From Convolutriloba macropyga (Eukaryota): a DNA stretch of 64,000 bases. The stretch covers positions 58,218,001-58,282,000 of the forward strand of contig NC_134471.1 of NCBI RefSeq assembly GCF_964194025.1, in the 5' to 3' direction. The notes under the pieces are model-generated. The model searched no databases and was not told the DNA's origin. It was given only the letters and a program-made list of their open reading frames with translations. The position numbers and the translations under genes are program-made. Positions 2,736 through 48,004 of this stretch are shown in pieces (the first letter of the stretch is position 1; each line of letters starts with the position of its first letter).

Positions 2736-4066
2736 CAATGAAAATTCTTTGAATTGTGCGTCAGGACTTGTCCTGCTATGTTTTTTACTTCGTCGAACTT
2801 TTTTTCGCTTTACCATTTTGCCGCTTTTTCAGCATTTTGCGTGAAATCTTTTTGACTTCTCTAGACTAGTTTCTTTCTTCTCCCATTCTGCTAAAAGTGA
2901 ACTTGAACATCAGTTGCTCAGCAAAGCAATTCAAAATGAACAGAGTCAGAATAAAAAATTGAAGTCAGAAATAGAAACGGGATAAACCCATAAAGCCCAA
3001 TTTTAGATGCCCGCTATTTGAACGTCGTTCCTATAAGTCTTAGTTACCATCTCTTATGCTTATTGGTATTGATAGTAGCCCCTGTAGCCTCTCTCTAAGA
3101 AACAGAAGTATGTTCAACTACGAAATGCCATCAAAATAAATCGGACTTAAAAAATGTTTTTGTACAAAAATCTTTTTTTTTCGATATTTTCTATTCTTTC
3201 AATCCCAATCATGCTTATTGAAATCAACGGCGGCTATTTTCCGGTTATTTCTTGGAAAAAACTTTTGTGATTGTCTGTCCAACCAAAACCTCGTACTTTA
3301 GAAAATAAAGAAAACAGTTGAAAGAGATTAGGACCGTTTTGTTGACCAGTGGTTTGATGCCCGTCTGCCATTTTTGTGAAGCAACTCTTTTTTCGATCAT
3401 CAAAGAGTTCTATTTCAAAATAATTGGAATATATTATTGAAACGTAGCTGTTGTCTGAAACACTATAATTTGACTCAATATATTCATTTAGATTTCACAT
3501 TTGCATGCGTTTGCGTCTTGTGTCTGACGAGCGTTAACTACTCAATTTAGTTGAGGATTACTTCGGTTATCAATTAAATTTTTTCGACATACCTTATTAA
3601 AATTTTCTAGGTCTCATTTTCTGCACTTGTTATTTGGTCTGCAGTAGTAATCGCTTTTCTTTTGCTGTCTTTGTGGGGTTTTCGCTCTACAAAATCTGTT
3701 ATTGAACTGAATTGCAGATAAGCTGCTCGTGTTGTTGATTGTTATTTGTTGTTGACTGCAATGTTTAGAATTTTTGGTTCTATTGTGTCACATAGCTGTT
3801 CGTTTTGTACATCATCGTCTGGCATATTTGTTATTCATATTTTTTTCAATACTTCAGGTTAGTAATCTTTAAAATTGAAATTGCGAGTCAACACTTTGAG
3901 AACGCTGTAAAAGTGCTCTATTGTCTCAAGTTTCTTCTGCTTCCAAGAAAAACGATCGAATCCATCAAATGTCTTGTTTCTAGGCCAGATGAGCATGTTC
4001 CAAGATTTTTTGTCAATTGGTATTGATCCTGATGGGAAAATATTTGAGAAAGGATACGTCCTCCTT

Positions 4067-4197
4067 AGTAGTGGATAAAACAGGGATACCAACCACCAGT
4101 AAAATTTGACCTTTTCTCCTAACGCTAATCCCGCATGTCGAATCGGGCCAAATTTTACTGCTTGTTGCTATCCCTGTTTTATCCACTACTACATATT
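4067..4197 (+). repeat. Left terminal inverted repeat; 4067-4190 is itself a palindrome
   Basis: Reverse complement of 18966-19096 with 2 mismatches. 4067-4111 pairs with 4146-4190 at 41/45 positions around a 34-nt spacer. Confidence 0.95.
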
Positions 4198-5152
4198 ACC
4201 TTTATATTCACTCAAAATCTATCCTTTCTTGTCTCACTTAGTGCAAACCACTAGTGTCGAGTTAAGCTGGTAATTAACTGTTATCAGACGGATAGTTTGG
4301 GTTCTATAGACCTTCGGTCATGCTTCGCCATCCCCACTGACTCCAGTGGCCGTCCCCAGATACTAGTATAAAGCTAGTCAGACCGTGTAACAAGCACGTA
4401 AAACCAACTTGCGAAAATTGGTGTAACCACTTCGTGGATAACTTGAACAAAAAAGAAAACTTGAACAGAAACTGAAAGAAATATTAAAATAATAAAAAAT
4501 AATACATCCCCCAATCAAAATTTAATCAATCTAAAACTAAAATTTTCTGTCTCACTTGGCGTAGGGGTTAAATCATCGAGTCTAGTTAAGTTGCTTTAGC
4601 AAACGGAAGGTTTGGGGTTCCTTCCTCACTATCTCCAGTGAACGTCCCCCGATTTGATGAATTGCTATAAAACTGAGTGAGATAAATAAACCAAATTCAC
4701 AGTTCTTAAAAAGGATGATCCCTGCTGTGAGACTGTATATTGGACACACTGTGATGGGTATACAGTTCAAAACACTGAGGTCGGTGGAAGCACAGTGATC
4801 CGTGTTTTTCAGTATAACCTGAATAAAAAAACCAGCTTAAATCTTTTATAAATTTTAAATTTTGCTAATATTTATATAATATTAAGATCCTTGCTAATTA
4901 AGCTAAAACCCAAAGTAATAGCAAAATTTAATAGTTTATTAAAAAATAAAGCAAATTTCAAAATAAGAGCGAAATCCTTTTTTTAAGCGCGAATCACTCT
5001 TTAAGAGCAAAATCGCCCCTATCGGAGTGATGTCCCAGTACAAAATCACTATCTATCGCGCTTAAAGAGTGATTTCCCTCTTCTTTAGATAACTCTTAAA
5101 GTTATCTAAATTTTTAAATAAATTTTTATTTTTTTTCCTTTTCTTTATTTTT

Positions 5153-5731
5153 TTATTTTAAATTATCTATACTCTTCAATAAATTTATATTCTCTTTTAC
5201 TTTTTCTATATTTATTCCATTATTAAAAAGAAATGATACAAAATTATAATTTTTACACGAACAACTTTCCCCAGTTTGGGTAATAGCTCTTCGAGGATTT
5301 AAATTTCTACTAAATCCTATAGTTAATTCTACATCTGGAGGTTGTTTCTTTACATGAGCTCTTATTCCATCATATCTCACAACAGAAGGACAATATAGAC
5401 AAATAACTTTAGCTAAAGTACAATTTCTACACGTATACTTACTCTCATCAAAATCAGTTAGCGGTTTTACAGAATTACATGTATTACAATTTCTAGTTAA
5501 GACTTTGGTGTTAAAGTTAGAGTAAGAGTAAGAGTTAGAGATTGAGTTAGTGTTATAGCTAGAGTTGAAGTTAGAGTTTGAATTATAGTTAGAGTTAGAG
5601 TTAGAGCTAACGCTAGAGTTATAGTTAGAGCAAGAGTTAGAGTTAGAGATAGAGTTAGAGTTAGGGTAAGAGTTAATACTAAAGCTAGAGTTATATCCAG
5701 ATTCATCTTTAAAAGAACAACCAGTTTTCAT
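5153..5731 (-). CDS. Polinton accessory protein: Ser/Asn low-complexity N-terminus plus Cys-rich (Zn-binding) C-terminus
   Basis: 192-aa ORF; (SN)n tract encoded by a TTAGAG-type hexamer repeat; CxxC pairs (CNTC, CRNC, CLYC) and a downstream His. Confidence 0.55.
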   Translation of the reverse strand: MKTGCSFKDESGYNSSFSINSYPNSNSISNSNSCSNYNSSVSSNSNSNYNSNSNFNSSYNTNSISNSYSYSNFNTKVLTRNCNTCNSVKPLTDFDESKYTCRNCTLAKVICLYCPSVVRYDGIRAHVKKQPPDVELTIGFSRNLNPRRAITQTGESCSCKNYNFVSFLFNNGINIEKVKENINLLKSIDNLK

Positions 5732-5880
5732 ACAAATACTACTTATTGTTTTAGCACCACATGCACATTTACTAATTTTGTCTTCATGATATATTGAATA
5801 ATGAAAAGCTAAATTAAAAGGGAATCCACACTTATGACTACACTCTTAACATTTTATAACCATTTATAATTGGCCAAATT

Positions 5881-7356
5881 TCAATTACACCCAACATATT
5901 TAGCCAAGATATCAGTTACATCTCTAGTATTATCTTTAGACGCGACAAACTCTGTTAAAAATTTCTTCCCCGTCGTATTGAGTGTATTAGTTTTATATCT
6001 TCTATCTAAAATCACTTCAAGGTCTAATTCCGTTCTTTCTCTAACAAAATTTATAATTTCATCTCTAATTTCTTCATTATTTCCATATAGTCTGTTTAAA
6101 TACCTTCGTCCCTCTTTATTTAAAATTCCAGTCTCTTTACTTATATACTCTCGTTTTAGCTTTTCGATAAACTGTTTTCTTTGCTCTTCTTCTCTGTATC
6201 CAAAATGGTGAAACATCTGCGAAGCAGTTCCACTGATGGACGAAGTCCCATTAACTAATGTACTTGCTATATTCAATATATTACTTGCACTCGTTGCCAC
6301 ATGTCCAGCAGTTTTTACTGTTGTGTCATGACTCATATAATTATATATCATGAAACATGTACCTATGACGCCTAAAATAGTTGATATTAATCTAAAACCA
6401 TCTGCTTTAATCATTTCTTTTGTTAAAACATCATTCTATATTTCAATACCTTTTAATGTAAGCAGTTTATTAAAGTAGAACTGATAATTATCATGATTAA
6501 TAGTATGTCTGTCTGTAGCATATATCGTGAGTGGTTTCATATATGCTATAAGATTATTTTTGTCTTCCCTTTCTAATTTATCTTTTAAACTCAGAGCTTT
6601 TAAATCATGGAAACCAACTCTCGAGTCATATATCATAGTTCTATTCTTATCACTAGTAATAAAAGTATTCTCTTTCCTATTATATTTAATTACACCATAA
6701 TGAAGTTCATCTGACATTCCGTCTGTACAATTAAAATGGTTACTATTTAACTCACTAATTATTTTAATGAAGTTATGTTCACATTTATATATTTCATTTA
6801 AATTTTTAAATATATCAGCTCCATTATAAGTTGTTAAATAAATAGTATCACAACTTGTTCTTGTTGTATTAATTATTTGGGCTGGTTTATGACACATTAC
6901 AATCATTTGAATATTATAATGTCTTCTTTCTGTGAAATAATAAGCTATATCCTTATTTAACTTATCACCCATATCATCAAGAACAATTAAACTATCTTTG
7001 AATTTAGACTTAATTTTTGATGTGATCATGTTTATATCGCATGTATTAAATCCATTATAAAACTCACCAGTCTCAAGATCTATCCAATCTCTATCATCTT
7101 TACATACAATGATTATATTTTTAGCTTGCTGTTGGTTTTGGTTTTGGTTCTGGTCTTGGTTTTGGTTTTGGTCTAAGTCTAACTTTAAATTTTGTCTAAT
7201 AAAATATGTTTTACCTGTTCCAGTTCCACCATAAACAATAGTATGTAATGGTGACTTTTCATATTCAAATCTAACTAGACTCCTATTCATAAATCCACCA
7301 AAGCTTTCCTCTAGTTTTGTATATTTTTTCGGTATTGAATCATATATTAAAAACAA
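5881..7356 (-). pseudogene. Packaging ATPase 1 (A32/FtsK-HerA-like) with long C-terminal extension, split by one in-frame TAG
   Basis: Walker A GGTGTGKT, Walker B LIVLDD, and the RHYNI motif in ORF 6436-7356. The stop at 6436-6438 is followed in frame by NDVLTKE and then ORF 5881-6414, which contains a hydrophobic segment (LISTILGVIGTCFMIY). Confidence 0.85.
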
Positions 7357-7424
7357 AATCCAATTATGGTAGTAAAAATTATAACTCGGCTACCTGTCTC
7401 CATTTTTATATTGATAATAATGCT

Positions 7425-7829
7425 ATGAGTGATATCACAATAAAAGATATCGGAAAAGATATAAGTCTAACACCAATTGAAATAGTGATGAGAGATCAAA
7501 CTCCAGATAACACAAGTGAACCTAACGTCAACATAATTGTAAACCTACATCCAACTGATGGTACACATCGGGTTTTAGTTATAAGAAGAGAAGGTGGTCC
7601 TGTGTATTACTTTGATAGTTTTGGTGTAGAATCCCCACCATTATTTTTAGAAGAATATGTTGATCTAGGCTCTAATGAGAGAATACAACAATATGATGAA
7701 TCGTATTGTGGGGCTTATTGTTTATATATGATCTATCTTATTGATAGAGGATTTAGAATTAACAAGGCTTTGAATATTCTAGTTAATCAATGTAAATATC
7801 CGGGAATATATAATGAGTGTTTTTTTTAG
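7425..7829 (+). CDS. Adenain-like (adenovirus-type) cysteine maturation protease
   Basis: GTH(R)V, YYFDSFG and IQ...CGAYC motifs give the His/Asp/Gln/Cys arrangement of adenain. The usual W after His is R here (CGG, probably from TGG). Confidence 0.9.
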   Translation: MSDITIKDIGKDISLTPIEIVMRDQTPDNTSEPNVNIIVNLHPTDGTHRVLVIRREGGPVYYFDSFGVESPPLFLEEYVDLGSNERIQQYDESYCGAYCLYMIYLIDRGFRINKALNILVNQCKYPGIYNECFF

Positions 7830-7834
7830 GTTGT

Positions 7835-8240
7835 AATGTTAATGATAAATATAATGTTAATGATAATGATAATGATAATGATAATGTTAATGTTNNNNNN
7901 NNNNNNNNNNNNNNNNNNNNNNNNNNNNNNNNNNNNNNNNNNNNNNNNNNNNNNNNNNNNNNNNNNNNNNNNNNNNNNNNNNNNNNNNNNNNNNNNNNNN
8001 NNNNNNNNNNNNNNNNNNNNNNNNNNNNNNNNNNNNNNNNNNNNNNNNNNNNNNNNNNNNNNNNNNNNNNNNNNNNNNNNNNNNNNNNNNNNNNNNNNNN
8101 NNNNNNNNNNNNNNNNNNNNNNNNNNNNNNNNNNNNNNNNAATGATAATATTAATGATAATGATTATGTTAATGATAATGATAATGATAATGATAATGTT
8201 AATGTTAATGATAATGATAATGTTAATGTTAATGATAATT
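7835..8240 (+). repeat. (AATGAT/AATGTT)n hexamer microsatellite encoding (Asn-Asp/Val)n; spans the assembly gap
   Basis: Directly visible on both sides of the N run (7895-8140). Confidence 0.9.
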
Positions 8241-8379
8241 TTATATATCTATTTGATGAAAAACATCAAAGGGGTAAACCTAACAACAAAGAATATCCGC
8301 GAACAGACTCCGTCTGTGGTAAACCAAGCGGTTTTTCCGATCTTAGTAACAATATCTCTGTAAGCATAAATGAAGATCT

Positions 8380-9023
8380 ACAATCATGGCTAAATGATGA
8401 TAACATAATTACTGAAGCTACACTCCGAGAGAACTTTAGATGTATAATATCTGGTCCTAATGAATGTGGTAAGACATTCTTATTATAAAAAACTAATTCT
8501 GGCTAGAATATACTTTGATAATCTATGCATCATTGGTCCTACTGGTGATCAATATGAAGGTGTAGAGAGAATAAACGATAAAGCAGATGTTGAGTTTGTT
8601 AAAGATATAAAAGGTTTACCCTCTCCCAATCAACTACCAAAAGATTTAAAGAAACTATTGATATTCGATGATGTTAGAGCCAAAGAACCAGTTATTAATG
8701 AATACTTTTGTAGGGGTAGACATAACAATTGTAATATGATATAACTTAATCAAAATCTATTCACAATAGATAGACAGAGTGTTAGAGAGAATTTTAATCT
8801 ATTTATTTTATTTGAACACAGAGGTAAAGTCCTCATATCTATATATCAAGATTTCTTTAATAATGTTGAACTTAGTTATAATGATTTTGCTAATATATGT
8901 AATAAGGTATGGAAAGAGGTAATTATATTATGGTAATCTTTTAATTACATTGTCATTGATATAGCTAAAAAGAAAAATATTAATGGTAAACTAAGAATTA
9001 ATTGGGACCGGAGAGTTTTGTAG
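8380..9023 (+). pseudogene. Packaging ATPase 2 (A32/FtsK-HerA-like), frameshifted
   Basis: Walker A SGPNECGKT; after a frameshift near 8485, Walker B LLIFDD, GRHNN, then *LNQNLFTIDRQSVREN...KLRINWD, ending at TAG 9021-9023. Confidence 0.88.
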
Positions 9024-9073
9024 TTTAGTTTAAGTTTAAGTTTATATCTCGACTAGATCAACGAAGTTGCTGG

Positions 9074-9815
9074 TTACACCAGATGTAAAGTAAAACTTAA
9101 TACATCACCATTAAAGTCTATAGGTCTTCCATGCTCATCTTTAATATGAAACTCTATATATTCTATTCTATCTTTAGTTACATTTTGATAAAAAGATATT
9201 AGTTGGTATAATATTTATCAAGTAACCTGGTGGTTTGGTTAGGGTAAAAGTATTTAGTATGTCTGTGTTATTCCCATTATCTTTAACACCAGATATCACA
9301 TTACAATGAATGTTAATAGCACTAAAATCCATAATATCAACAATTTTCTGAGATGTATATTTACCTTGTTCATATACTATTTTTCTAAAGCCCAGTAATG
9401 GGGCTATTGAATTTTCTATGTCAAAGTTAATTACACCTTGTTTTATTTCCATTAAACTTTTCATTGTACTCTTATCAGGTTCTATTATAACATTACCATT
9501 AGTTTCTCCTTTTATTAATTCTGCTATTTCGATTAATTCATATGCACCTGGTATAACAGCTAAAATACGGGTCTTTGATCATGTTTCACCTTGGGTATCA
9601 TATAAAAATTGATTGTTCCTTCTATTCACATTAAACACCAAATTATAAACAGATAATCTAATTAAACCTAATTTTGATGAGTTAAGTATAGGTTAACTAA
9701 GAGTAAACTTTTCTGTTGGCTTTATCATTCTAAAGTTAAGTGTATGCTCTTCTTTAGTTTTAGTTAGAGTTTCATGTATCTTTTGTAGTTCATATAGAAT
9801 TAAATTGTCTGTCAA
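9074..9815 (-). pseudogene. Minor capsid protein (penton-like, single jelly-roll)
   Basis: Reconstructed LSVYNLVFNV..NNQF, PGAYEL, SIAPLLGF, INIHCNVI and C-terminal IKDEHGRPIDFNG...TLHL motifs typical of Polinton/adintovirus mCP. Start decayed to TTG; stops and frameshifts present. Confidence 0.8.
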
Positions 9816-9932
9816 TTTTTTTTAAATATTAGATTATATTTATAGTTATGATTACAGCTTCGGTTATAGTTATACCTATAGTTATAATTATGGTTATAGT
9901 TATAGTTGAAGTTAAATTTTTGGATTATAAAA

Positions 9933-11175
9933 ATGAACTTTAATTTGGATACAAATTAATGTTATAATAATGATATACAAAAATTAGGATTATAAAATAT
10001 AAACCTAATAAACTAGCAACAATGAATACTGTTAATACTAATATTAATATCATACTCAGTAGAGAAGAGAATCATTTAAATTTGCGTGATTCGTATCTGG
10101 AGATAGAGTTTGTTGTATCAGATGATGCTGGTGGTGTATTTGCTAATAATGCTAATATCAGATTAGTTAATTATGGTATGATGGCATTGTTTAGTTCAGT
10201 TAAACTTGAAACTAGTGGTGGTAGGACTAATGAATATAGAGATCCTTGTCATCTGAATCTATTGATGGATATGTTATTAACTAGTATTGATGATGAATAT
10301 GAGAGTGGTTTTGTTAGAGATCAAGGCAATAGAGATAGTCAACTTAAAGGTGACCATATTGCTGCAGAACAAAGTCATATATATATGATGATTAAGGTGA
10401 GTGATCTATTTGGTTTTGTAAATGATTTAGAAAAGATTATGAATGGTTCAGGATTTAAACTATTATTTTAAAAAAATAATAATGATAGAGCTCTATTTAC
10501 AGTTAATGCCGGTGCTGATGCAGTTTGTAATGATGGTAATTTAGATATTAGAGATATATCATGGTGTGTGATCAGTATTGATCCTGGTAATGACAATAGA
10601 ATTATTGTACAAAAGGGTTGAAGTAAAAAGAATATTGTAGACTTTAGCTATTATGAAAGAAAGACGTTTTATAAGAGTGTACCCAATGCTAGTAGCTTCT
10701 TGTTTGATCTAGGTATGGAAAGTGGTATGGAAAGACCACAATATATAATAGTATGTTTTGAAAATAATAATGTTAATGAACAAACTCATGATGCCGTACA
10801 TTTGATAAAATGAATGTTACTGAAAGTTATTGTAAGATTGGTAGTGAGTTTTATCCCGAGGTTTGAATGAATATTGATTATGGTACTAATAATTATAATG
10901 AGGCTTTTAAACAGATTATCATCTTTAATAAAGATTATACTGGGCTGCCACATAATATAAAACCATATATAAATCATAGAATATTCAAAGATAATTATAA
11001 AATATATGTATTCGATACTAGATATCAAAATGATCATATAGATCCACAACTAATACAACTTAATTTTAAAATTAGTGCTGCAGTTGCCGATGTTATATGT
11101 CATGCATTATTATTAACCAGAAAGGTTATTAGTACTAATAGTGAAGGTAATAAGATAGTTGATATAGTCTCGTAG
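9933..11175 (+). pseudogene. Major capsid protein (hexon-like, double jelly-roll)
   Basis: ORFs 10022-10471 and 10867-11175 plus intervening frames: DSYLEIEF, ALFSSVKLETSGG, ERPQYIIV, GSEFYP, NYNEAF, YKIYVFD. About 410 codons, divergent from the mCP gene. Confidence 0.8.
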
Positions 11176-11569
11176 AGTCTAACAGCCGGAGGCTTATTAT
11201 ATCTTAGGCCTAGTTATAGTCATGGTCATTGTTATCTGCGAAGCAGTTCATGATAGTCATCGTTATGATTATGGTGAAACATTGGCGAAGCCCAATAGAC
11301 ATAGTTATGGTGAAACATGGGCAAAACCCCATAGCTCTAAACTATTTCTTACATGTCTTAACAAAACCCTTAGCATAAATAATATCTAATTTCTTTTTAT
11401 TCTCTAGAGATAGGACTCCGTTCATGCTACGCCATCGGCCCTTAGGTTCAAGTTTTGTCTTAGGCTTAGTCTTCGAGCTTCGCTCGCGGGTGGAACCCGT
11501 AGTCTTAGGGTTAGGTTTAACAACAAAAGTATTCTACTTTTTAGCTTCCAATTTTTTTTATATATAGAA

Positions 11570-12010
11570 AAGAGTCTTTTACAGAAATTCAAAACTAATT
11601 CATATTGTGTTGGTGGTAGACATTATAGAGGTACTAATAACATAAGAAGTTTTATCGGGGAACCCCATTCACGGATTACTTCAAAAGGTACTAAGATGTT
11701 AAAGGGTAATTTTGTTAAGTGTAAGAGAAATAAGTCAATGACTGTTAGTGATGCAACAATAGAAGCAGAGGGATTGGAAGATTTCTTTAAAAGTGTTGGT
11801 AAAGCTAAGGCTAACTTTAGAAAGAAGGTTGATGATAATCCAGTAAGAGCATTAGAAATAGCAATTAAAATAGGAAGTGTGGCTGCATCTAGAAACCCTA
11901 GAGCTGCTTTATCAGCCACACTTCATTTAATTGAATTTGCAACTACTGGTGAAGGTATAAAGGTAGTACAAAAAGGAAGAGGGTTATACTTAGGTACAAA
12001 GAAAAGATAA
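11570..12010 (+). pseudogene. Small basic virion/core-like protein with Zn-ribbon-like N-terminus and GxG(L) putative protease sites
   Basis: In-frame upstream extension (YCVGGRH...KC) of ORF 11696-12010; AEGL, GEGI and GRGLYL motifs; probable start ATG decayed to AAG. Confidence 0.55.
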
Positions 12011-12119
12011 TTTATTTATGGCTAAGACTAAGACTATAGTTTCAGTTAAAACGCTATAAATATCTATAAATATTAATGCTAATATTATTATTACTAAAAA
12101 CATTGTTATTCCTAAGCAC

Positions 12120-12704
12120 TTATGGCTTTAATCTAAAAAAACACTTAACTTCTTTTTCTTGTTCTTCTTATATTCTTCATATACCTTGACTAATTCATAA
12201 TATTCATCATTATCTATTTTATTATCTTTCATTGATTTATTATATAGTATATTAAGATTGTCGCTAAACTGTTTACTTAAATTATACATTTGTGAATACT
12301 TTATAATTTTATTTCTTATTTTAAGATTAATTGTTTTTGATAATGAACCACGAACAGTTGCTGCAGCAAAAGCTGTTGGTATAGAATAAGGTAATCCTAT
12401 ACCTGTTAATGCAACTGATGTTGTTGTTGCCGTTGTTGCTATTGATGGTAATACTATGTCTGTTATCTCAGCTACGTTAATATAATTTTTATCTACTTAA
12501 CTTCCTATTATAGTTATTAGTTTCAGTTTCATAATATTTTCTAATATCTTTTATAATGTTAATACTATTATTAAATTTATTATTGGCTTGAATCTTTTCA
12601 TTTATTAATCGTTCTGACACTGATGATAAATCTGGACATAGTAATCTCTCACTCGGTGCTGTCGGAATGGTCATGGACTCCGTCATAGTTTTGCTTATTT
12701 TCAT
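12120..12704 (-). pseudogene. Membrane-active protein resembling the adintovirus 'GasderminX' family
   Basis: Reconstructed hydrophobic hairpin (TSVALTGIGLP..PTAFAAA) followed by LSKQF...KSMKDNKIDNDEYYELVKVYEEY, matching from memory the C-terminal D-x-x-I-x-x-x-E-[FY] pattern of that family. Confidence 0.55.
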
Positions 12705-13406
12705 TAGTAAAAATTCTTTCTATTTCTTTCATTATATTTTCTTGTTTAAAACCATAATGCATCTCAAGTCTTGCCTTCTCTTTATTATCAACTAACGTAC
12801 TTTTTAAAAGTATAGCAATTATATATTGTACTATAACTTTTCTAAGAGATTTATTGTATTTTGTCATTTCTCTTAGACCGTTAGTAAACATATCATCTAA
12901 ATATATGTTAGTAATATTTTGATTAAACTTATTATTATCAAATTCTTGTTTTATTTGATTATATTTAGAGATAGTATCAGCAGCAACTTTATTACAAAAG
13001 TCAACAGTATTTATGATTTCATTTGCTGATTCAATAAACTAATTAGTTCGTCATTGACTCCTGTTTCATTTAGTTGTAATGTTTTAGTTGTGACTTTATC
13101 AAATTCACCTTTTCTTAGCTCAGTTACGTTTTTACTTAAAATATCTTTTTTATTATTAGAAGATAATGAGTTATTGTCACAATACTCTTTATTAACAACA
13201 TCTTTTTCATCTATCGGAGGATGTACATTTGTAATTTTATAGGTATCCTTCATATCAATATTATCATTATCTTCTAGGAATAACCCACGAACCTTACTTA
13301 GTGATAAGTTGTTTGTTGATGTTGATCCGAGAAGCGGGTTCCCCGATGGACCTCCGGTCATGCTTCGCCATTGATGTTTCGCTTGGTTAAATCTATTTCT
13401 TGTCAT
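12649..13406 (-). pseudogene. Putative fiber/virion appendage protein; ORFs 13011-13406 and 12649-12891 are probably one frameshifted gene
   Basis: IDMK..YKITNVHPPIDEKDVVNKEYCD resembles the N-x-x-x-P...D-x-x-[NT]-K-x-Y-x-D fiber/adhesin neck motif, followed by coiled-coil-like sequence. Confidence 0.45.
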
Positions 13407-14326
13407 CTTTGTATTTGTTTACAGTAAGAAATATATCTAACGATTCTAAAACTTTGATTAGATTCAAAGTCAAACTCGGATTTTGATAGTTCCTGTTCAT
13501 AATATTTACCTTCTATTATCTCACCATTAATATCTTTTGCTTTATATGTTGTTGGTTGTGTTTCTAAAACTTCATTAACAAATTGTTCTGTATTCCAATT
13601 AGAAGTGTATCCCTTAGAGAAGATTTTGCGTTTATCTGCACTTCTAACATAATCACCAACTTTAAATTTTGGTTCAATATTAGTAGAAGTAGATATAATC
13701 TGCGAAGCAGGTTCCCTGATATCTCTAACTGTATCAGGATTATTAGAAGCATCAACTGTTGTCATATTAATTGTTGAATGAATGTTATTGTTATATGTTA
13801 TGACTGCATCATTTAGTATATTTACCCAATTACCATCACCATTGATGAACATTGGTTTTTTAATTATATGTAATAATGTTCTATTGAATCTCTCTATAAA
13901 CACAGCATTTAAATCACTATAAGTAGAATATAGTTTTGATTCAAATTATTTAAGTAAAGATTTAAATGTTTTTTTTCTAAAACTCACTACCTCTATCTAC
14001 CCATACCTTTTCTGGCTTTCGACTTTCAGAGCCACCCTGTGGACCTTCTGATAGGATTGTTTTAAAACCTTTAGTTATAGATAAACCAGATTTATTCTTT
14101 AATCGAATAGCCCATGCATATTTTGTGAATATATCTATAACTGTTAATATAAACTTATAATTATTATTGTATTAACTTAGAGATGACTTATCAATTAAAT
14201 CAGCTGACCATGTTTCATCTTTATATAATGGTATTATTCTTTCTCTTCTAACTTTGTTATTTGAGGACTGAAAACTTCTTTAGCTAATAGTTGTTGTTGT
14301 TGTTGTTGTTGTTGTTTTTCCATCAT
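13403..14326 (-). pseudogene. Retroviral-like (rve) DDE integrase of Polinton type
   Basis: Reconstructed WSADLID, LTVIDIFTKYAW, WVDRGSEF, IERFNRTL, YNNNIHSTINMT, KFKVGDYVR and FSKGYTSNW motifs; several stops; no C-terminal chromodomain evident. Confidence 0.93.
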
Positions 14327-15329
14327 TATTTATTTACAATAGTTAAAAACAAAATTATCTGCTCTTGATTAATAATATTCATAGATAATAGTTGCTTAGA
14401 TATATCTAGCAATTCATCATATAATCCATCATGATCAGCTTTTGTTTCTAGTATTAATAATTCTAATCTTTCTACTAAACCATTTAAATGGCAACTTCGT
14501 TGATTGTTGGGGACAGTCTTAGTAACACCACTAGCTTCTATTTGTTTATCAGTCTCATATTCAGTTTCTTCTTCTTCTTCTTCTACTCCTTGTTCATAGT
14601 CACTAGTATCAGGATTATATAAATAATCTTCACTGGAGGTTGGTAATGATATAACATGAGAAGTGGTTTCACCGATACTAGCAAACATTCCTCTTATAAG
14701 TTTTGATCTATTACTTTTACTATCTCCTCTTTGTTTATAACAATATCCCTTAGAAATTGTTTTATTTTGTTTTCTTCACCTTTTATATCTCCTTCGGTTA
14801 CATTTTTATTAGTAATAAATATAGCAAGGCCCTTAGAAAAATCATAGACTTTACCTTTCATTTTTATACCATCAGGGACTAGAGATACATCTACACCATT
14901 TATTTTAAATTTGTTTGAATTTGGATAAACTGATTTTAATTGGAATTGTTTATTTGTTTGTTTACCCATTTCTAACAAAGTATCAATCATATCATTGTCC
15001 ACAGCAAATGTTTCGCCTCTATCATCTTCTAATGTTACGGGTTGATCGGGCGTGGGTGTTGAGAGAGCAGCCCGTTCATCAAGAGAGCTGCTTTGTTGAT
15101 GGTGTCCTAGACTCTTTAAAGCATTACTATTACTGGCTAGCGCGGCTAGAGTTTTGTTTTGAAGAGCTTGCACTGTTTCAGCGTTTGTATTTAAAGATTT
15201 AGTTAGAGGATCAAATAAATCTTCTATGTCACCATAATATTCTTGTTGTCTTAGTTTATCTTCTAATCTATTTCTTCTGTTTTGTTTTTCTAGACTGTTT
15301 AATTCTATAAGGTCATCTAGCTTAGCCAT
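14326..15329 (-). pseudogene. Conserved Polinton-type protein of unknown function (two ORFs, probably one frameshifted gene)
   Basis: N-terminal DLFDPLT and C-terminal LVERLELLILETKAD...DELLDISKQLL motif recurrent in Polinton ORFs. Confidence 0.55.
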
Positions 15330-15448
15330 TTTTATATGTTGAGAAACATTATTATACTATGTATGAATTAGATCTATAATATAAAAACAATACTGTCTTA
15401 TGTATGAATTAGATCTATAATTATACTAACTACTATTTATTTTTATGT

Positions 15449-18400
15449 TCACAGATCATTATATAGTTTAATAGCAGCTTCAATTAACATTCTATCATCA
15501 TTAGTAGTCAGTTCTAAAATATTTTTCATCAATGATCCTTAAGACTCTTTACTTACATCTAACCCTAATTTTATTAATAGCTCTAATATAGTATAATTAA
15601 TTTTATTTACTAGATCTCTTTTGAATAGATATAGATTCTCATCATGAGGATAGCTTTTAATATTATTTACGTAAAGTTTTATCATCAATTGTGTTTTGGA
15701 CTAATTTTACTTGTTTTTGCTGTTGTCATGTTATCAACTTTTTGTATTCTACATTCATCTACACTTCTCTCTGTGTTACACATTAGTGCATTATAATACT
15801 CCTCATGTTTAGCATTGTTACAATTCTTTTTTCCCTTCTCTTTAGTTTTATTTGGGTAGTCTTTGAAGCTATATGTCTTTGGTGTTAGGGCCACAAACTC
15901 TCCTTTGATATTACTTCCCATTTCATGTTTGAATTTACCAGAGACTTTATTATTAGTTTTGATTGATGGCGCCAGATTGGTAGCGTTTACATCATTGCCT
16001 AGCCGTATAGGTTATTCTTGTCTATGTACCATATCTGCGAAGCAGGTTCCTTGATTGACCTCTGGTCATCCGTGAAACGGCTTCGCTGATGCATCGCCAT
16101 TTTACTTCCATTACTATTGTTGACTATCCTATGAACCATTATACCGCATATGCCACTACTCTTTGCTTCAACAAAATCATCTAGCATTTGTTTGTCTTGT
16201 AAGGTATCTAATGAAACACTGCTTGACATTAAGCAACAATCAAAACTATAATCCGGGAGACTATTGTAATGTAATAGGTTGAGTCCACATTCTTTCATAC
16301 TTATTCTGATATATTCATTCATGCAGCAGTCTAATATTTCCACATCATTCTGTAAAAACTCTGTAAAACAGTTAGATCTTTAGCAGTTTTATGTCTGTTG
16401 TCTTTATTAAAGCTATTGACTTCTTCTTGTGTTGGTAATTTATTAAATAGAAAGGATTTGAAGTTTTCTATATTTAGATTACCTATAACTTCTTGGTACA
16501 ACTTTGTTGTGGTTCCCCAGGTGTCTAAACCAAAGTGTTCATATGGATATAATATTTTAGTTTTAAACCCATAAATCTTTGCCATTTGATCTAGAGGCAT
16601 AGCTAAGAAGTTATAACTATCTAAGAATTTGAGACAACCAATGCTAAACATCTTAGACTTAACAGCGGCTAGTGTTATGTTATCTACTTTTCTTCTATCA
16701 TTATTCTGCTTAAAGAGTTCACTGTATAGTAGATTGAAGTCATAGCCAGAGCCATTTTGGAATATTACAGGATTGAAGTTCTGTTGTTTATACCTCAGAT
16801 TACATATTTTACATGCTGGTCCTCTATATTTACCAGTTTCATAACAAAGATCTCTTACTTTATTAATACATGTTTTACTGCAGATATGCAAGTGTTATTA
16901 GTTTCATGATGTAATTTATCTTCTTCATTGAATATCATTTGTTTGTTGCGCTTGAAGCTATTCTCAGTTTCTATTTCTAATAGATCACTAGCAAATCTTT
17001 TAATACAATCAAGACCGAAGTAGTATTTGAAATTACCCTGGCAGATGTAACCCACACTTATTGGTATTTGTTCAGCTATTACACATTTACAGTCATTAGT
17101 TGCGACTTCAACAATGCAACATTCTATATCAGCAGTTATAACATTTTTATATTCTGACGCTTATGTTCATTTATAAAAGTAATTTTTTTCTTCTTAGGAC
17201 AAAAAAACCTCGGGTTCGAAAGAGTTGTTACATTCATGTTTGTCGTATTTGATTTGTGAATCAAACCAATATGTACATCTGTCACAGTAATAGAATTTGT
17301 GGTTCATTCTTTTTTGTCGATCTAATAAGGTTTCTATGTTTTTAATTAGAGCACAGTGTTCTGTAATACCATCTCCCAATCCAATATTCTGACATCTTTT
17401 CTATCTTTATCAAAATCATCCATTTGTTTAAACAATTCTACTTTGCCCCCATCACAAGGTGTTTACACCCAAATATTAACATTGTACACCTTCTGTATTC
17501 TTATAATATAACCAAAATCATCTTCATCTCGTTGACGTGCTTCAATTAGATTATTTACATATTTAATCTCGCGTGTTGCGTGGTCCATAGCAGGATGTAG
17601 CCAAGCAGTAATAATTAGTTGCAAGCAGTTATTTTTGTAACTACGTATTTTTAACATCAATTTAGAGTTTTTGAGATCAGGGGGTAGATCTATACAACTA
17701 CCAATAGATGCTTTAGTTGGTTCAATATTTATCTGAATACTTCTCAATCCACGAAATTCGAAGTCGTAGCCATAATCTTCATATAATTCCTCTTCGAAAT
17801 CTAGCCATTGTTTGAAATCACCGTAGTCATATATAGCCATATTAATAATATAGTCGGTGTTGAAGAATATTTTTGTAATTTTAACTTCTTCTTTGGTTCT
17901 CTTCTTGTACTCACACTGGGCTGTGACCTTATATTTAAAACTCTTAACTTTTCTAAACTGATAACAGTCTTTAATTTCCTCTAATATGTAATCAGTTGCT
18001 TCGTCTATATCTTCAATGTAATTCCCACCTTTATCCGTAATATAAAATTCTCTCATGTTCTGACTTGAATTTATATCAAACTCTTTTGTGTTTTCTAGAT
18101 ACATGCGATTGTGACTATATGAATGAGTAGTTAGAGCTATTTTAATTCTAAGTTCTTCATGACATTCTTTACATTCAAACTTAATTCTGGTGTAGATATT
18201 GTCGTCGGGTTTAGTTTTAGTTTTAATAATATCTTTAGTTTCAGTTTTAGTAGAAGGTTTGACATAGATAAAGTCTCCATCCGAATCATACATTTTCATT
18301 ATAGTTTTAGTTGAGGCTTCAGTTTTAGTTGAGGCGTCAGTTATAGCCTCATCCAAATCAGAATCAAACTTTTTCTCCACTAGTTCTTTATGTTTGAGAT

Positions 18401-18503
18401 CGTATGATTGATGTCTGTATAAACCCTTCTTTGTTTCAAAGGATAAATTACAGACGTCGCAGAAGTTCACACTTGTGACATTACTGTTTGTTGAGTGAGA
18501 CAT
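15449..18503 (-). pseudogene. Protein-primed family B DNA polymerase (pPolB), fragmented and internally deleted
   Basis: N-terminal C2H2-like fingers; HCALIK; exonuclease I (ADIE); Zn insert VRD(L)C..TGKYRGPAC..CNL; exonuclease II (FQNGSGYD); KFLDSY; YPYE; motif A YIDKNNLYG; C-terminal GKFKHE...EFVALTPKTYS...KEKG. Confidence 0.92.
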
Positions 18504-18556
18504 GGTGTATTTTATTAGGGAAAACTTTGGAAAAAATTTTTTTTGAAAGTGAAAAA

Positions 18557-18855
18557 ATGAAGTGTGATAAGTGTAAAATTAAGCCTTGGAAAAATGTTGT
18601 AATGATTGCAAAGAATTAGAATATTGTTGTTATATATGTAAAAATATAGTTAAAGTAAAAAATTATATTAAACATTTGGGAGACCATTATGATAATTCAG
18701 ATCAATATCTGGCGTGTAATATGCGTAAAGTTTACAAACATATTTCTTTCTTTAGGTTTAGAAATGGAAGATGCAGATTGTGCATCTATCTTAATAGATA
18801 TAGATATACAAATACCAAAGATAGATTCAAGGAAGGAATATGCCAAAAGGTTTAA
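18557..18855 (+). pseudogene. Small Cys-rich (Zn-binding) accessory protein
   Basis: MKCDKC then, after a frameshift, CCNDC...CCYIC...HLGDH...CRLC. Confidence 0.45.
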
Positions 18856-18965
18856 TATAAAAGTGTAGTATAGACAAGAAATATTTTTTGTGATGTACTT
18901 AAGTGAATTTGGAAACGAGCTTATTATTAATTTCTAGAATTCAGTTTAATGCTAGTCTTAGAGTG

Positions 18966-19096
18966 AATATGTAGTAGTGGATAAAACAGGGATAGCAACA
19001 AGCAGTAAAATTTGGCCCGATTCGACATGCGCGATTAGCGTTAGGAGAAAGGGTCAAATTTTACTGGTGGTTGGTATCCCTGTTTTATCCACTACT
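18966..19096 (-). repeat. Right terminal inverted repeat; 18973-19096 is itself a palindrome
   Basis: Same structure as the left TIR, followed immediately by the TSD CTCCTT. Confidence 0.95.
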
Positions 19097-20469
19097 CTCC
19101 TTCTCTTCGATACTCAAATTGAGCAAAGATAATCAATTTTGTTCAATCATGGATCATGGTTGTTTGGCGCACAAAATTTCAGTTTGTATTGATTGCTGAC
19201 ATTTGAGTTCCGTTTGCAATTTGAGTTGTTTATTTCTTCATTTGCATTTGTTTTGCATTTCTTTATCCAGAAGATCGGTCGGATCAGTTACTGGGCTTTA
19301 TATTAGTAATTCGGTCCAGCAGGAAGTTTTACTTGTTTAGGTTTTTCCTATAACAAATGCTCAAGGGCGATGCTCATGGATGGGGGCTATCTGTGGTGCT
19401 AACTCTGCCATGTCGTTGTTGTCAACGTGTAATAACGATGGTTACTGAAAAGCAAAGCAAATCGTATAGTTTGTTATTTGGGAGAATTTGACTTCGCGTT
19501 GCGAAATCGCTAAAGCTATCAGCAATACTAAGCAAGAATCCAAGTCCAGTGTTTGCACCCCAACTTCAATGATAAATCATTGCTATTTGTGCAGAAAACA
19601 AAGAACCAGTTATTGTCCAAAAACCTGCGAGCAAAATAGATTTGTTGAAGCTTTTGCAACATCAAAAAATTGCCTTTAACATTGTCAATGGAAAAGTGTA
19701 CATAAAACAGTTTCAAATCACATGTTCAAAAGCTCGTTTTCGTTAAGTTTAGCTTGTTTCTGGTTTGTAATTCTTTGGAGAGAGTTGTTTAGTCAAACTT
19801 TTGTCAAATACGTATAAGGAGACGAATAAGTTCATACTGAGTTTCATAGCACTTCTTAAAAAAGAAGTGCAAATGAGTAGCATTGACGTATTTTTTAAGT
19901 TAAGCGAGCACGTAGTCATAAAATAGTCTCAATGCAGAGCACAGTTCTGGCGGATAAAATTAGCAGCTTAAGAAAATTCGTTTTTCCTGTTTGACCCCCC
20001 CCCCCATCCAGCTGTTGTTTTCACCCGCACTAATGTCATATAAAACGTGATTATTTCTGCATATCACATGCCTTTTTTGCATGTTTTATGGATCTGGAGA
20101 ACCGTCACGTATTGTTGGTGATGGCACAAACGGAAAATGTCCTATTTTTTTGCTACCATTTGAATTTTATACGACGTTTTTAATCAGTGTTGTTTTCGAT
20201 CCTTTCGATTTGTGCCCCACGTTAGAGAGCACGTGCTATTACAGAGTAAATCATTATGTAGAAAATAGGCAAGTGCGTTTGCGGGTTTCAAATAATATGC
20301 CTCCACTAAGCTGGTGGGTACAATTGAAAATAAATAGTCTTAACTCTTTTAAACAAGAAAATAATAATATAACCAAATGGGTAAAGTTTACGTGCCTTCA
20401 GTGTAGTCAGGGATAAAAAATTTTATAATTGAAGTAATGCAATAATCTTCTGATTAATGCTTAATGCTA

Positions 20470-23400
20470 CTCATTCAAATATTCATTCTTATATATTTAA
20501 AAGTAAGAACCAAGACCCATAAGATCTTAAGTTTCTGTCTATTGGTATATTTTGACGCTGACATTCCAAGAGCTCTGATAAAGTTTTTATGAAGCAAACT
20601 TTTTCTGGACACTCTGACACTCAAAGGTAACCTTTTCCACTTTAGTATGCTCTTGAAAGTCAATGATCTTTTACTCTGCTTCGTATACTTTTGCGTTCTT
20701 ATTATCAGGTGTTTTGTCTGTTTGTTCTGTTATCCCCTGGCTAACTCTCTGCGAAGTTTCAATGAAATTTCAGTAAAAAGAAATAGATTATGGGAAATTT
20801 GATTTGAAAAGATCACGACAATGATAAAATTTATGACGCGTATAACAAATTCCAATGTTGTCGACTTAAACGCTATATGTATTTGGTTGACCTTAATTGA
20901 AAAAGATTCCACTGATTGACAAATGAGAGAAAGCTAAAAAAAATTAAAACATGCAAACTTAGTTCCAAATGTATACTGTAGTGAGCGAAAGGCAGCCGTT
21001 TTTCAAAAAAATCTTCATTCGTATAAAAGAAAGGAAGGGTTCCTGAAAAAGTACTTGGTGTACTCCATGATCAACGACAAGTTTTGTTGGTTTCTCAGAG
21101 CCTATTTTAACACATTATCGCATTGTGATTTTTTTTTCGAAGTTCAAAATTGAAGCAATCTTGCCTTTTAAGAAAAATTTTGTGTGAAATTGATCTGAAT
21201 ATTTCAGCAAGGTCAAAACACTGCTATAGTGGTTTTCCATTTTTAATGTTTCTATCAGTATCACAGGAAAACAATACTGCATCTGCTGAGGGCTTTTTAT
21301 TGTCGAAATCAAATTTTTCTTCATAAAATTGATTTTTCCATCAAAGTAATCCATCACTTCGATAAGAGGCTTCTCGAACAGAAAAAATTTGTGTGACTGA
21401 AATTGTTGGATGGTTGCTCATTTGTAGTTTATTCTTTTTTGTGAATTGATGTTATATATGCATTATTTAGACTATTTGAAAGAACAATCACTAGAATTCA
21501 AGTCTGGAATGACAATTTTTTGTCACAAACTACCATTCGCATATTACAATCTTTAAAGCTCCGGTTAACCTGTCGATTTAAACGCTATAAGTTTTCTGTT
21601 GACATTAATTGTAAAAAATTCCACTGATTGACAACTGAGAGAAAACTAAAGATTGAAAAACATGGAGCCTTCCTTCCAAATGTATTTTTAGTGAGCAAAA
21701 GGCAGCCGTTTTGCAAAAAATCTTCATTCGTATGAAAGAAAGGAAGGGTTCCTGAAAATGTACTTGATTTACTCCATTATCAACGACAAGTTTTGTTGGT
21801 TTCTCAAAGCCTTGTTATTTATTAACGTTTTGTGATCTTTCCTGAGGTTTCCTGAGTTTTCCTGAAGTTTTCTTGCCTTTTAAGAAAAGTTTTGTGCGAA
21901 ATTGAACTGAATAAATTAGTAAGGTCAAAATAGTGCTGCAATATTTTTTCCATTTGTAATGATTTCAACAATCTCAGTGAAAAACAAAACTGCATTTTCT
22001 GACAATTTTTTATGTTGAAATCCGAATTGTACTTTATTTGATTGGTGTCTCTATTAATGTAAACCGTCATTTCGATAAGAGGCGTCTCGAAAAATTCGGC
22101 AAAAATTGGTGTGACTAAAATTGTTCGATAGTTGCTCATTAGCAGTTCATTCTTTTTTATGAATTGGTTTATTATATGCAAGATTTAGATTACTTGGAAT
22201 AACGACCACTAAAATTAAAGTGCGGAATGACACAATTTTTTGTCACAAACTTCAATTTGAAATTCAAAACTTTAATGCTCTGCTTAACCTGTCGATTTAA
22301 ACGCTGTATGTTTTTTGTTGACATTCATTGTAAAAAAAATCCACTGATTGACCAATGAGAGACAACTAGCGATTTTAAAACACGCAGCCTTGCTTCTAAA
22401 TGTACTATTAGAGAGCGAAAAGCAGCCGTTTTTAACATCCTTCATTCGTATAAAAGAAAACTAGGGATCCTAAAAAAGTACCTTTGTGTACTCCATGATT
22501 GACGACAAGTTTTGTTGATTTCTCAGAGCCTATTTTAACGCATTAACGCATTGTGATCTTTCTTCGAGGTTCAAAGTTGAAGCAATCTTGTCTTTTCAGA
22601 AAATTTTTTGTGAAATTGAGTTGAATATTTCGGCAAGTTCAAATCACTGCTATAGTGTTTTTCAACTTAGTGTTTACATCAGCACCATTGGAAAACTATT
22701 TTGCATCTGCTCAGAGCTTTTAATTGTCCAATCCGAATTGTTCTTCTTTCAATTGATAACTACATCAATGTAACCCATCACTTTGATAAGAGGCTTCTCA
22801 AACAATTTGGCAAAAATTTGTGTGACTTAAATTGTTCGATTGTTGCTGATTTGTAGTTTATTCATTCTTTTTTATGATTGGGTGCGATATATGTATGATT
22901 TAGACTACTTGCAATAACAATTACTAAAATTCAAGTCCAGTATGACAATTTTCTGTCGCGAACTACAATTCGCTTACAACAAACTTTAATGCTCCGGTTA
23001 ACCTGTCGATTTAAACGCTGTATGTTTTTTGTTGAAATTAATACCAAAAAACTCTACTGATTGACAAATGAGAGACGACTAAAGATGTTAAAACATGCAG
23101 CCTTGCTTCCAATTGTGCTTTTAGTGAGCTCAAAGCAGCCGTTTTTCAACATCCTTCTTTCGTGAAAAAGAAAGTTAGGGAACCTAAAAATGTTGTGATT
23201 TTTTTTCGAGGTTCAAATTTGAAGCACTTTTGCCTTTTAAGAAAGATTTTGAGTCGAATTGATCTGAACATTTCAGCAAATTCAAAACACTGCTGTAGTG
23301 TTTTTCCACTTTTAATGTTTCCGTCACTCTCAATGGAACACAATACTGCATCTGCTGAGGGTTTCTTTACTGTCTAATCCAAATTGCTCTTCATTCAATT

Positions 23401-42447: not shown

Positions 42448-42820
42448 CTAGCTCAAAAAAATGAAGAAAGCTGACTTCTGACTTTCATATTTGCGGGTTT
42501 TGGGTTATTTGTTCAGCATTTGACATTTAAGTTCTTCTGATTTTCAGATATGCGGGTTTTGGGTTATTTGTTCAGCATCTGACATTTAATTTCTTCTGAT
42601 TTTCAGATATGCGGGTTTTCTAGCTCAAAAAAATGAAGAAAGCTGACTTCTGACTTTCATATTTGCGGGTTTTGGGTTATTTGTTCAGCATTTGACATTT
42701 AAGTTCTTCTGATTTTCAGATATGCGGGTTTTGGGTTATTTGTTCAGCATCTGACATTTAATTTCTTCTGATTTTCAGATATGCGGGTTTTGGGTATTTG
42801 TTCAGTGTTTGACTTTTAAC
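42448..42820. repeat. Nested tandem repeat (~172-bp duplication containing ~60-bp subunits)
   Basis: ctagctcaaaaaaatgaagaaagctgac at ~42448 and ~42619; tgcgggttttgggttatttgttcagca subunits repeated. Confidence 0.9.
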
Positions 42821-47722: not shown

Positions 47723-48004
47723 TATGAAGGATTGTATCTAAATAAGTGTCAATATTATTTCAATGAACACTATTATGAACCTAGATCTTTAATCGAGATC
47801 AATAATTTGCCCAATATACAAAAAGTATTTTTTCAACGATTGGATTTAATTTTTGCTGGGAGGAGCAACCCCAAAAAAATTCCTAAAATCTTTCAATAGT
47901 ATCAAAATAAAACGTTTATTCGTCAATCCAGAGTTGGATCACGGGCTTAATATCTCAGGCGAATCTTTAGCTTGGATCACCGGTTGTTTTTCCACGTCAA
48001 GTTC

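Follow-up and report, generated by a model that had tools for sequence, protein, structure and literature searches.

What business does a palindrome have at the end of a transposon that encodes its own protein-primed DNA polymerase? The question is posed by a stretch of the genome of Convolutriloba macropyga (NCBI RefSeq assembly GCF_964194025.1, contig NC_134471.1, positions 58,218,001 to 58,282,000 of the forward strand), 64,000 nucleotides in all, which we call the window and number from its first letter. Within it lies a Polinton of 15,030 bp (4067-19096), bounded by a 6-bp target-site duplication (TSD), and each of its two terminal inverted repeats (TIRs) is, over almost its whole length, complementary to itself. 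The standard model for Polintons relies on long-range pairing between the two TIRs, and to our knowledge neither the replication of a Polinton (or Maverick, the other name in use) nor the protection of its ends has ever been demonstrated. We have taken up one small part of that large problem: are these self-complementary ends an accident, a set of binding sites, a primer, or a fold that the element keeps? The comparative evidence set out below indicates that the structure of the ends, and not their sequence alone, is under constraint in a Polinton that encodes a protein-primed polymerase (pPolB).

The palindrome and its copies

The hexamer CTCCTT, read directly, stands at 4061-4066 and again, identical, at 19097-19102; that is, it is found beside the outer ends only, and the inner boundaries carry no duplication and belong to the TIR, which closes with an ACATATT tail. 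Sequence comparison and folding delimit a left TIR at 4067-4197 (plus strand) and its mirror image, the right TIR, at 18966-19096 (minus strand). Once one of them has been reverse-complemented, the two are identical over 131 nt except for two differences, one within the spacer and the other at the border of arm and spacer, and past these 131 nt the likeness stops abruptly. The first 124 nt of each TIR form an imperfect palindrome with 46-nt arms, 91% complementary, around a spacer of 32-34 nt. On the left, the outer arm (4067-4112) contains an invariant 16-nt terminal box (4067-4082), and the spacer (4113-4144) is followed by the inner arm (4145-4190), with its inner box at 4175-4190, and by the 7-nt tail (4191-4197); on the right, reading inside out, the tail is at 18966-18972, the inner arm at 18973-19018, the spacer at 19019-19050 and the outer arm at 19051-19096.

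A 22-nt end motif makes the arrangement plain. The window contains four copies of it and no more, where chance would predict none, at 4067, 4169 (minus strand), 18973 and 19075 (minus strand), so that each end carries one outward and one inward copy. Folded as single-stranded DNA, the 124-mers reach -33.7 to -47.7 kcal/mol (z scores of -11.6 to -15.3), and not one of 200 shuffled sequences folds equally well. A first-pass annotation of the window had described all of this, and its description was right in every particular: the four motif copies, facing outward and inward at each end, the two differences, the arms, the spacer and the TSD on the outside only. Its call of a Polinton is likewise supported, by gene content as well as by the TIRs and the 6-bp TSD.

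Is this a peculiarity of one locus? We examined 11 sister copies (L001, L002, L004 to L010, L043 and L044) from assembly ERZ25071359 (ENA), in which the window forms part of contig ctg36040_50x_l. At whichever of its ends the sequence covers, the homologous palindrome is present in eight of them (L002, L004, L007, L008, L009, L010, L043 and L044), which together with the window copy provide 12 complete ends and one that is nearly complete; the ATPases of L043 and L044 are only 63-64% identical to that of the window, and yet the palindrome is there. Two further copies, L001 and L005, end in palindromes of unrelated sequence, and L006, which is truncated, retains the inner arm alone. The first-pass annotation had contemplated a one-off duplication, with other copies lacking the inner arm, and that idea fails here. 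The palindrome is a real, family-wide end structure and not a one-off accident. Nor is it easily blamed on the assembly. Library artifacts can create palindromes, and a chimeric fold-back in long reads is the kind of event that does so, but we find it scarcely credible for a structure seen at 12 complete ends on nine contigs of 35-56x coverage, with TSDs beside the ends and contig sequence continuing past them.

Three copies are complete (the window copy, L007 and L008, with 15,030, 19,209 and 18,338 bp), each with a perfect 6-bp TSD of its own (CACTGA for L007 and AGAGAG for L008) and with TIRs that are about 98.5% identical. Their TIRs measure 131, 182 and 142 nt, respectively, which in every case is the palindrome plus 7-18 nt, and for this reason we can say that the TIR of the family essentially is the palindrome, having shrunk to little more. 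The greater length in L007 comes from a 48-nt duplication of the outer arm and the start of the spacer; the duplication is present at both ends (L007:447-618 and 19484-19655) and therefore either arose earlier or was copied from one of them to the other.

Each 124-bp unit has both terminal boxes oriented as they would be in a complete miniature element, and one might imagine that the ends are just that: independent fold-back mini-elements (miniature inverted-repeat transposable elements, or MITEs, made of two Polinton termini) that bound the full element and are also mobile alone. We regard this as very unlikely. The units are mirror-imaged at the two ends of all three complete copies and have no TSD of their own, the only TSD being outside; moreover, a gapped probe for the two boxes matches element ends alone in the loci examined and nothing in the JGI metagenomes or in IMG/VR, in the latter of which the 16-mer end box on its own gives 32 single, chance-like matches. 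No solo 124-bp unit was found in the roughly 90 kb of non-element DNA examined, a scope at which its absence carries no information.

What, then, of the two copies that end differently? L001 has a 116-nt palindrome that is self-complementary nearly throughout (z score of -11.8) and L005 a 65-nt palindrome with perfect 21-bp arms (z score of -8.2). Both are bounded by AGTA(G/A)T...A(C/T)TACT, and both sit outside remnants of the standard inner arm. That they are separately inserted MITEs is unsupported, neither having a TSD of its own.

Two side observations concern damaged ends. Inside the L001 palindrome (L001:12765-12958) lie three short remnants, each ending in ACTACT and each preceded by a few bases like those with which the element body opens, as though earlier termini had been stacked there. 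Elsewhere, two truncations, independent of each other, have spared precisely the inner arm (L006:4495-4544 and L008:4558-4607), the break falling at TIR position 82-84, which is the border of loop and inner arm; one borders unrelated DNA, and the other lies where the units of an internal 2.3-kb tandem duplication meet. These truncations are suggestive of breakage at the hairpin loop.

Pairing, orientation and the mode of copying

The alignment of ends gives the palindrome a definite layout: a 16-nt box starting AGTAGT, an 11-nt variable segment, a 19-nt arm segment, a 32-nt loop, the mirror arm and the 7-nt tail. Conservation is distributed very unevenly over these parts, the outer box being invariant, the inner box 99% identical and the spacer 96%, as against 66-70% for the 11-nt arm segments. 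Pairing tells another story. Over the 46 arm pairs of the aligned ends, about 89.5% of cells are paired, and the value falls to 30-47% when the partner is slid by one to three columns as a control. In six pairs (18-21 cells), both partners have changed, and the arm variants, about five in number and each specific to a lineage, are matched on both arms. The covariation score is reached by none of 500 shuffles, a statistic that overstates independence because the copies share descent and the compensatory variants fall in about five lineages. Positions 28 and 30 of the arm, in the 19-nt segment, are by contrast unpaired in every copy.

Because the changes on the two arms compensate each other, the alignment shows that arm pairing is maintained in this Polinton family. 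And because one segment is free in sequence yet fixed in complementarity, and stands beside mismatches that are themselves fixed, the pattern argues for a selected fold (a hairpin or a cruciform) rather than for duplicated binding sites or conversion between arms.

Both of these alternatives merit a fuller hearing. In the first, the integrase or a complex of polymerase and terminal protein binds duplex DNA at the two 16-nt boxes, outer and inner, and perhaps at the loop; the inverted arrangement aids assembly of a multimer, and self-complementarity is a by-product. Many transposons have several transposase sites at each end, and here the boxes are invariant, the spacer is 96% conserved and the arm interior is variable, each end having just two boxes and no additional one in the subterminal DNA. 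We nevertheless think this rather unlikely. Double changes have kept the 11-nt segment next to the box complementary while its sequence varied, which is the mark of pairing and not of a sequence that is recognized, and the replacement ends of L001 and L005 are self-complementary nearly throughout and share no sequence with the standard ends.

In the second alternative, one ancestral fold-back duplication was inherited by all copies, its arms were kept alike by occasional arm-to-arm conversion, and it does nothing. Palindromes can arise through fold-back repair, and the homologous palindromes are all of single origin. Against a neutral relic stand the persistence of the palindrome across copies whose ATPases have diverged as far as those of L043 and L044, although long palindromes are usually unstable; the trimming of the TIR to the palindrome in the three complete copies; the appearance, at least twice, of unrelated palindromes with the same boundary motifs; and the five or so lineages with compensated arm variants, which are hard to square with conversion tracts when two mismatches only 1-3 nt away have stayed fixed. 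Accidental annealing is named as an alternative for palindromes of a comparable kind in a July 2026 preprint on Halocafeteria seosinensis (bioRxiv 10.64898/2026.07.28.741278). For the present family, we consider the neutral explanation improbable.

If the fold is selected, is it a primer? Here, the asymmetry of the palindrome is helpful, since its spacer and the imperfections of its arms can be read in one direction or the other. Rolling-hairpin copying with terminal resolution should cause separate integrations to sample both orientations. In all 13 readable ends, the spacer and arm asymmetries are oriented alike relative to the element body, matching at 88-92% when read from the outside in and at 72-77% when reversed. 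The inverted (flop) spacer was found in none of these 13 ends, which come from nine separately integrated copies; had each integration sampled flip and flop equally, so one-sided a result would turn up about once in 4,000 times at most. The flip and flop isomers whose existence the first-pass annotation had wondered about are thus not seen, every readable end being in one orientation. The same annotation had proposed a hairpin like that of parvoviruses or telomeres, and half of this stands: the ends are able to fold into a long hairpin, and the part that suffers is self-priming.

The absent flop, in other words, weakens the case for rolling-hairpin replication of this Polinton. A 3-nt tandem repeat at the ends of a molecule is typical of slide-back priming, and such a repeat at the tip, the constant orientation and the encoded protein-primed polymerase favor faithful copying from end to end.

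One could still hold that, after excision, the palindromes fold and their 3' ends prime synthesis in the manner of a parvovirus or poxvirus. A terminal palindrome of about 124 nt followed by a short non-palindromic tail recalls parvoviral inverted terminal repeats (ITRs), and a nickase of the Rep type might be dispensable if a junction-resolving nuclease, for example the Endonuclease VII domain described below, were to act in its place, which is speculation. A model of this kind has been published for the palindrome-bearing virophages of Halocafeteria (bioRxiv 10.64898/2026.07.28.741278). We rate its chances here as low: the 0-of-13 count for flop is one reason, and others are the fixed arm asymmetries, the presence of a protein-primed polymerase among the family's genes, and ends that begin with a 3-nt tandem repeat. 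Further, no HUH or Rep nicking-enzyme domain appeared in a Pfam scan of about 35 ORFs (open reading frames) from the window and its sister copies, although small or broken ORFs could hide one.

We are left with an explanation on which we would bet about evenly, namely that the ends are a structural module, conserved and hairpin-forming, that is copied from end to end by protein priming and whose local fold-back aids the restoration of ends. The protein-primed polymerase would copy the element from one end to the other, which would account for the lack of flip and flop. Whenever a strand was displaced or resected, each end could snap back locally, much faster than the two ends could meet, so that the terminal box would be double-stranded again with no need of the opposite end 15 kb away. 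The inner box, placed opposite the tip, might then serve as an internal template from which eroded terminal nucleotides could be restored on the spot, and the fixed arm mismatches may tell the genuine outer end apart from the pseudo-end within. More speculatively, branched or hairpin DNA might be handled by the domain of the Endonuclease VII type to which the polymerase is fused. The ends of L001 and L005 look like the outcome of end loss followed by a new palindrome, as if only those products that ended in the priming motif were usable.

Several things weigh against this structural module, in addition to the shared descent already mentioned. The two 16-nt boxes and the loop are the most conserved parts, which fits sequence-specific binding of a protein to duplex DNA as well. 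Some hairpin-replicating viruses hold one end in a single orientation. The decayed right end of L004 lacks the inner ACTACT. The hairpin or cruciform in vivo and a free linear form are predictions, the copies examined being integrated ones alone. Finally, every copy inspected is degenerate, and therefore both the activity of the family and the priming mode of its polymerase are read from homology only.

A bolder version, which we put forward tentatively and would not ourselves back at even stakes, is that in this lineage a self-contained fold-back telomere, with a spare, inverted priming box at each end, has taken the place of the long TIR, that displaced or eroded ends restore themselves on the spot, and that lost ends are rebuilt by way of new fold-back palindromes, as in L001 and L005. 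Were it true, a mobile element of eukaryotes would stand, in its mechanism, between protein-primed replicons (adenovirus, Polinton) and hairpin-ended ones (parvovirus or bidnavirus, poxvirus), and it would bear on the relationship between the two kinds of DNA virus, hairpin-ended and protein-primed.

The element, its genes and its neighborhood

That the element belongs with the Polintons/Mavericks is indicated by its domains (pPolB, rve, Pox_A32 and a double-jelly-roll capsid), by the 15.0-19.2 kb of the complete copies and by their perfect 6-bp TSDs. It is a decayed, integrated copy of an abundant family (at least 733 relatives of its ATPase and at least 881 of a capsid piece in ERZ25071359), and every core gene in it is broken; the sister copies are likewise broken, to differing extents. 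We counted breakage relative to the longest sister ORFs. A variant genetic code is not the cause, since no stop reassignment lengthens the ORFs beyond the effect of having fewer stops.

From left to right, the genes begin with one for a Ser/Asn-repeat, Cys-rich protein (5159-5863, minus strand, one stop) and one for an A32/FtsK-type packaging ATPase (5896-7359, minus strand; Pox_A32), which is broken by one in-frame stop where sister ORFs run to 370-500 aa; PF04665 gives 30.2 bits on the window ORF (cut-off 22.8) and 33.2 bits in L007. Next comes a gene on the plus strand (7401-9017; about three stops and at least one frame change) that joins a protease-like N-terminal domain, by way of an Asn/Asp linker, to a second P-loop domain. 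In its first part (7401-7829), a His...Asp...Gln...Cys-like order of motifs can be seen by eye, and some relatives give E values of about 0.03 to Peptidase_C39/C48; the assignment as a protease is otherwise unconfirmed, with no match in Pfam, PHROGs or PDB sequences and an AlphaFold model that, at pLDDT 43, is too poor to use. The second P-loop protein fused in this way, encoded by the whole of this gene and by L007:7634-9082, gives 17.9 bits to RNA_helicase (S3H-type), which is below threshold.

This gene also contains a run of N (7895-8140) inside a hexamer repeat, (AATGAT/AATGTT)n, whose translation to the left and to the right of the gap is Asn/Asp. As written, the gap is 246 = 41 x 6 letters long and so preserves both codon frame and hexamer register; the landmarks that flank it have an equal offset (21) in the public contig, and the corresponding stretch of sister copies falls within one ORF of about 480-520 aa. 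Because frame, register, offset and sister ORFs agree, continuity of the gene through the gap is plausible, not proven. The gap lies 3.7 kb from the nearest TIR and has no bearing on the ends.

There follow a conserved gene at the position of a minor capsid gene (9077-9818, minus strand; about two stops, one frame change), without a match in Pfam or PHROGs, and the gene for the double-jelly-roll major capsid protein (9980-11175, plus strand; two to three stops, at least one frame change). The latter is recognized by DNA homology to sister genes that match PF21738 (66.8 bits in L043, 49.3 bits in L009), and it is 90% identical in DNA to the capsid gene of L002. The rve (retroviral-type) integrase gene (13409-14273, minus strand) is homologous to those of the sisters, where PF00665 passes its cut-off of 32.6 in L043 (33.3 bits) and stays just below it in L002 (32.0 bits), and contains one to three stops and one to two frame changes, the count varying with the sister ORF taken as reference; beyond it is a conserved gene of no assigned function (14344-15332, minus strand; one frame change, no stops).

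The last gene, for the polymerase (15452-18575, minus strand), is heavily broken: its pieces lie in three different frames and contain at least eight stops. A piece of it gives 20.3 bits to DNA_pol_B_2, and at the DNA level it is homologous to the genes of the sisters, in which PF03175 (DNA_pol_B_2) reaches 57.3 bits on L009:16695-18281 (cut-off 25.8) and 42 bits on L008. The same L009 ORF matches Endonuclease_7 (PF02945) with 29 bits, and the order of domains (L009:16695-18281; L007:16673-18133; window 15452-18575) is C2H2 zinc fingers, then the Endonuclease VII domain, then directly the polymerase domain. An Endonuclease VII domain ahead of the polymerase has already been recorded in insect Mavericks (PMC5803895), and the architecture is therefore not specific to this family.

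Between the ends and the genes lies a subterminal, non-coding module of about 470 bp. It adjoins the ATPase-side palindrome in the window (4215-4700, plus strand), in L001 and in L005, and it stands, mirrored, beside the polymerase-side palindrome in L008 (19920-20386), L009 (20254-20718) and L010 (17630-18071). Such a switch of ends would fit a TIR that was once longer and has been lost differentially, or else copying from end to end.

The element has smaller peculiarities as well. The heptamer GCGAAGC, an unusually stable DNA mini-hairpin, occurs nine times in its 15 kb and twice in the other 49 kb of the window, and the other 209 permutations of its letters reach at most four. The heptamers lie in GC-rich patches of about 25-80 nt, in an element that is otherwise of 26-30% GC. 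Several of these patches are insertions of 23-39 nt that are absent from most of the sister copies L001-L010, which bear patches of their own elsewhere, and several that carry the heptamer are short insertions inside element genes. Such a patch looks like a tiny mobile or templated palindromic insert, reminiscent, by analogy, of the GC clusters in AT-rich organelle genomes.

The rest of the window is repeat-rich. Degenerate Ty3/gypsy remnants (rve, Integrase_H2C2, Integrase_p58_C, RVT_1) occupy 46841-52046 and 60672-61160, in its GC-richer part; tandem repeats are found in the host flanks at 2441-2726 (152 nt), 40380-40503 (39 nt) and 42448-42819 (172/59 nt); and the 18 kb from 20000 to 38000 are of even composition (GC 0.31-0.35), with no ORF longer than 121 aa. 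No match to a tRNA or an Rfam family was found within the 64 kb, and a search for an empty site found no paralogue of the element flanks in the window and the sister-locus DNA examined.

Fold-back ends elsewhere

How do these ends compare with others? Canonical Polintons/Mavericks are 15-19 kb long, with a 6-bp TSD, TIRs that start with AG and a short tandem repeat, and genes for pPolB, an rve integrase, an A32-type ATPase and a double-jelly-roll capsid protein. The descriptions reportedly go back to Kapitonov and Jurka (2006) and Pritham et al. (2007). Our family matches in size, TSD, TIR start, polymerase, integrase, ATPase and capsid, and it differs in having a TIR of only 131-182 nt that is almost wholly one self-complementary unit, with its box twice per end. 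Relatives beyond the source assembly did not appear in a scan of IMG/VR and the JGI metagenomes with profile-derived peptides.

Among viruses, the obvious comparison is with the ITRs of parvoviruses and dependoparvoviruses, whose single-stranded DNA genomes replicate by a rolling hairpin with the help of a Rep nickase, giving flip and flop. The likeness is considerable, for these too are terminal palindromes of similar size with a short non-palindromic part and imperfect arms that have conserved mismatches; the difference is that our family has no flop in 13 ends, no Rep among the scanned ORFs and a protein-primed polymerase among its genes. The presence or absence of flip and flop is accordingly a discriminator that can be checked wherever protein-primed and hairpin-primed copying of palindromic ends are to be told apart. 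Adenovirus is protein-primed and has a short tandem repeat at its termini; once a strand has been displaced, pairing of its repeats re-forms a duplex origin, and a damaged end can be repaired from the other repeat. Its ITRs are not self-complementary and find their partner at the other end of the genome, whereas the Polinton ends described here could each pair with themselves.

Similar in form are the elements of Halocafeteria. The preprint (bioRxiv 10.64898/2026.07.28.741278) describes palindromes of about 52 nt in TIRs, next to TSDs, in several subtypes of endogenous virophages and one subtype of Polinton-like virus, mostly in elements whose replication genes are other than pPolB, and it proposes hairpin priming; an analysis of covariation or orientation is not reported in the text consulted. 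The likenesses are a palindrome within the TIR that adjoins the TSD, membership in the same virus supergroup, RVE integrases and the integrated state, and the differences are a palindrome of about 124 nt, an encoded pPolB, a fixed orientation and compensatory changes in our family. The first-pass annotation had taken Polinton TIRs to be not normally self-complementary, and the novelty of the ends needs qualifying: terminal palindromes were published in 2026 for endogenous virophages and one Polinton-like-virus subtype of Halocafeteria, but in a literature search that yielded one relevant source overall, we found no description of palindromic, hairpin or fold-back TIRs for Polintons that encode pPolB. 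The present case extends terminal palindromes to such a Polinton, in a large, repeat-rich genome, and adds covariation, fixed orientation and end turnover. It bears on the choice between protein and hairpin priming, a question posed in 2026 with regard to virophages and Polinton-like viruses.

Bacteria offer an analogy of mechanism. The telomeres of linear Streptomyces replicons are capped and primed by terminal proteins, and their packed palindromes fold back and serve as a template that restores truncated terminal nucleotides (PMC4513846, PMC5449611). What they would share with the Polinton ends is a fold-back palindrome at an end of the terminal-protein type, an analogy of mechanism only, for in Streptomyces, replication starts internally and the last stretch is patched, the palindromes are several and small, the proteins are Tap and Tpg, and no integrating transposon is involved. 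If the fold-back telomere that we tentatively propose is real, it would tie the virus-like transposons of eukaryotes to the logic of these terminal-protein-capped bacterial telomeres.

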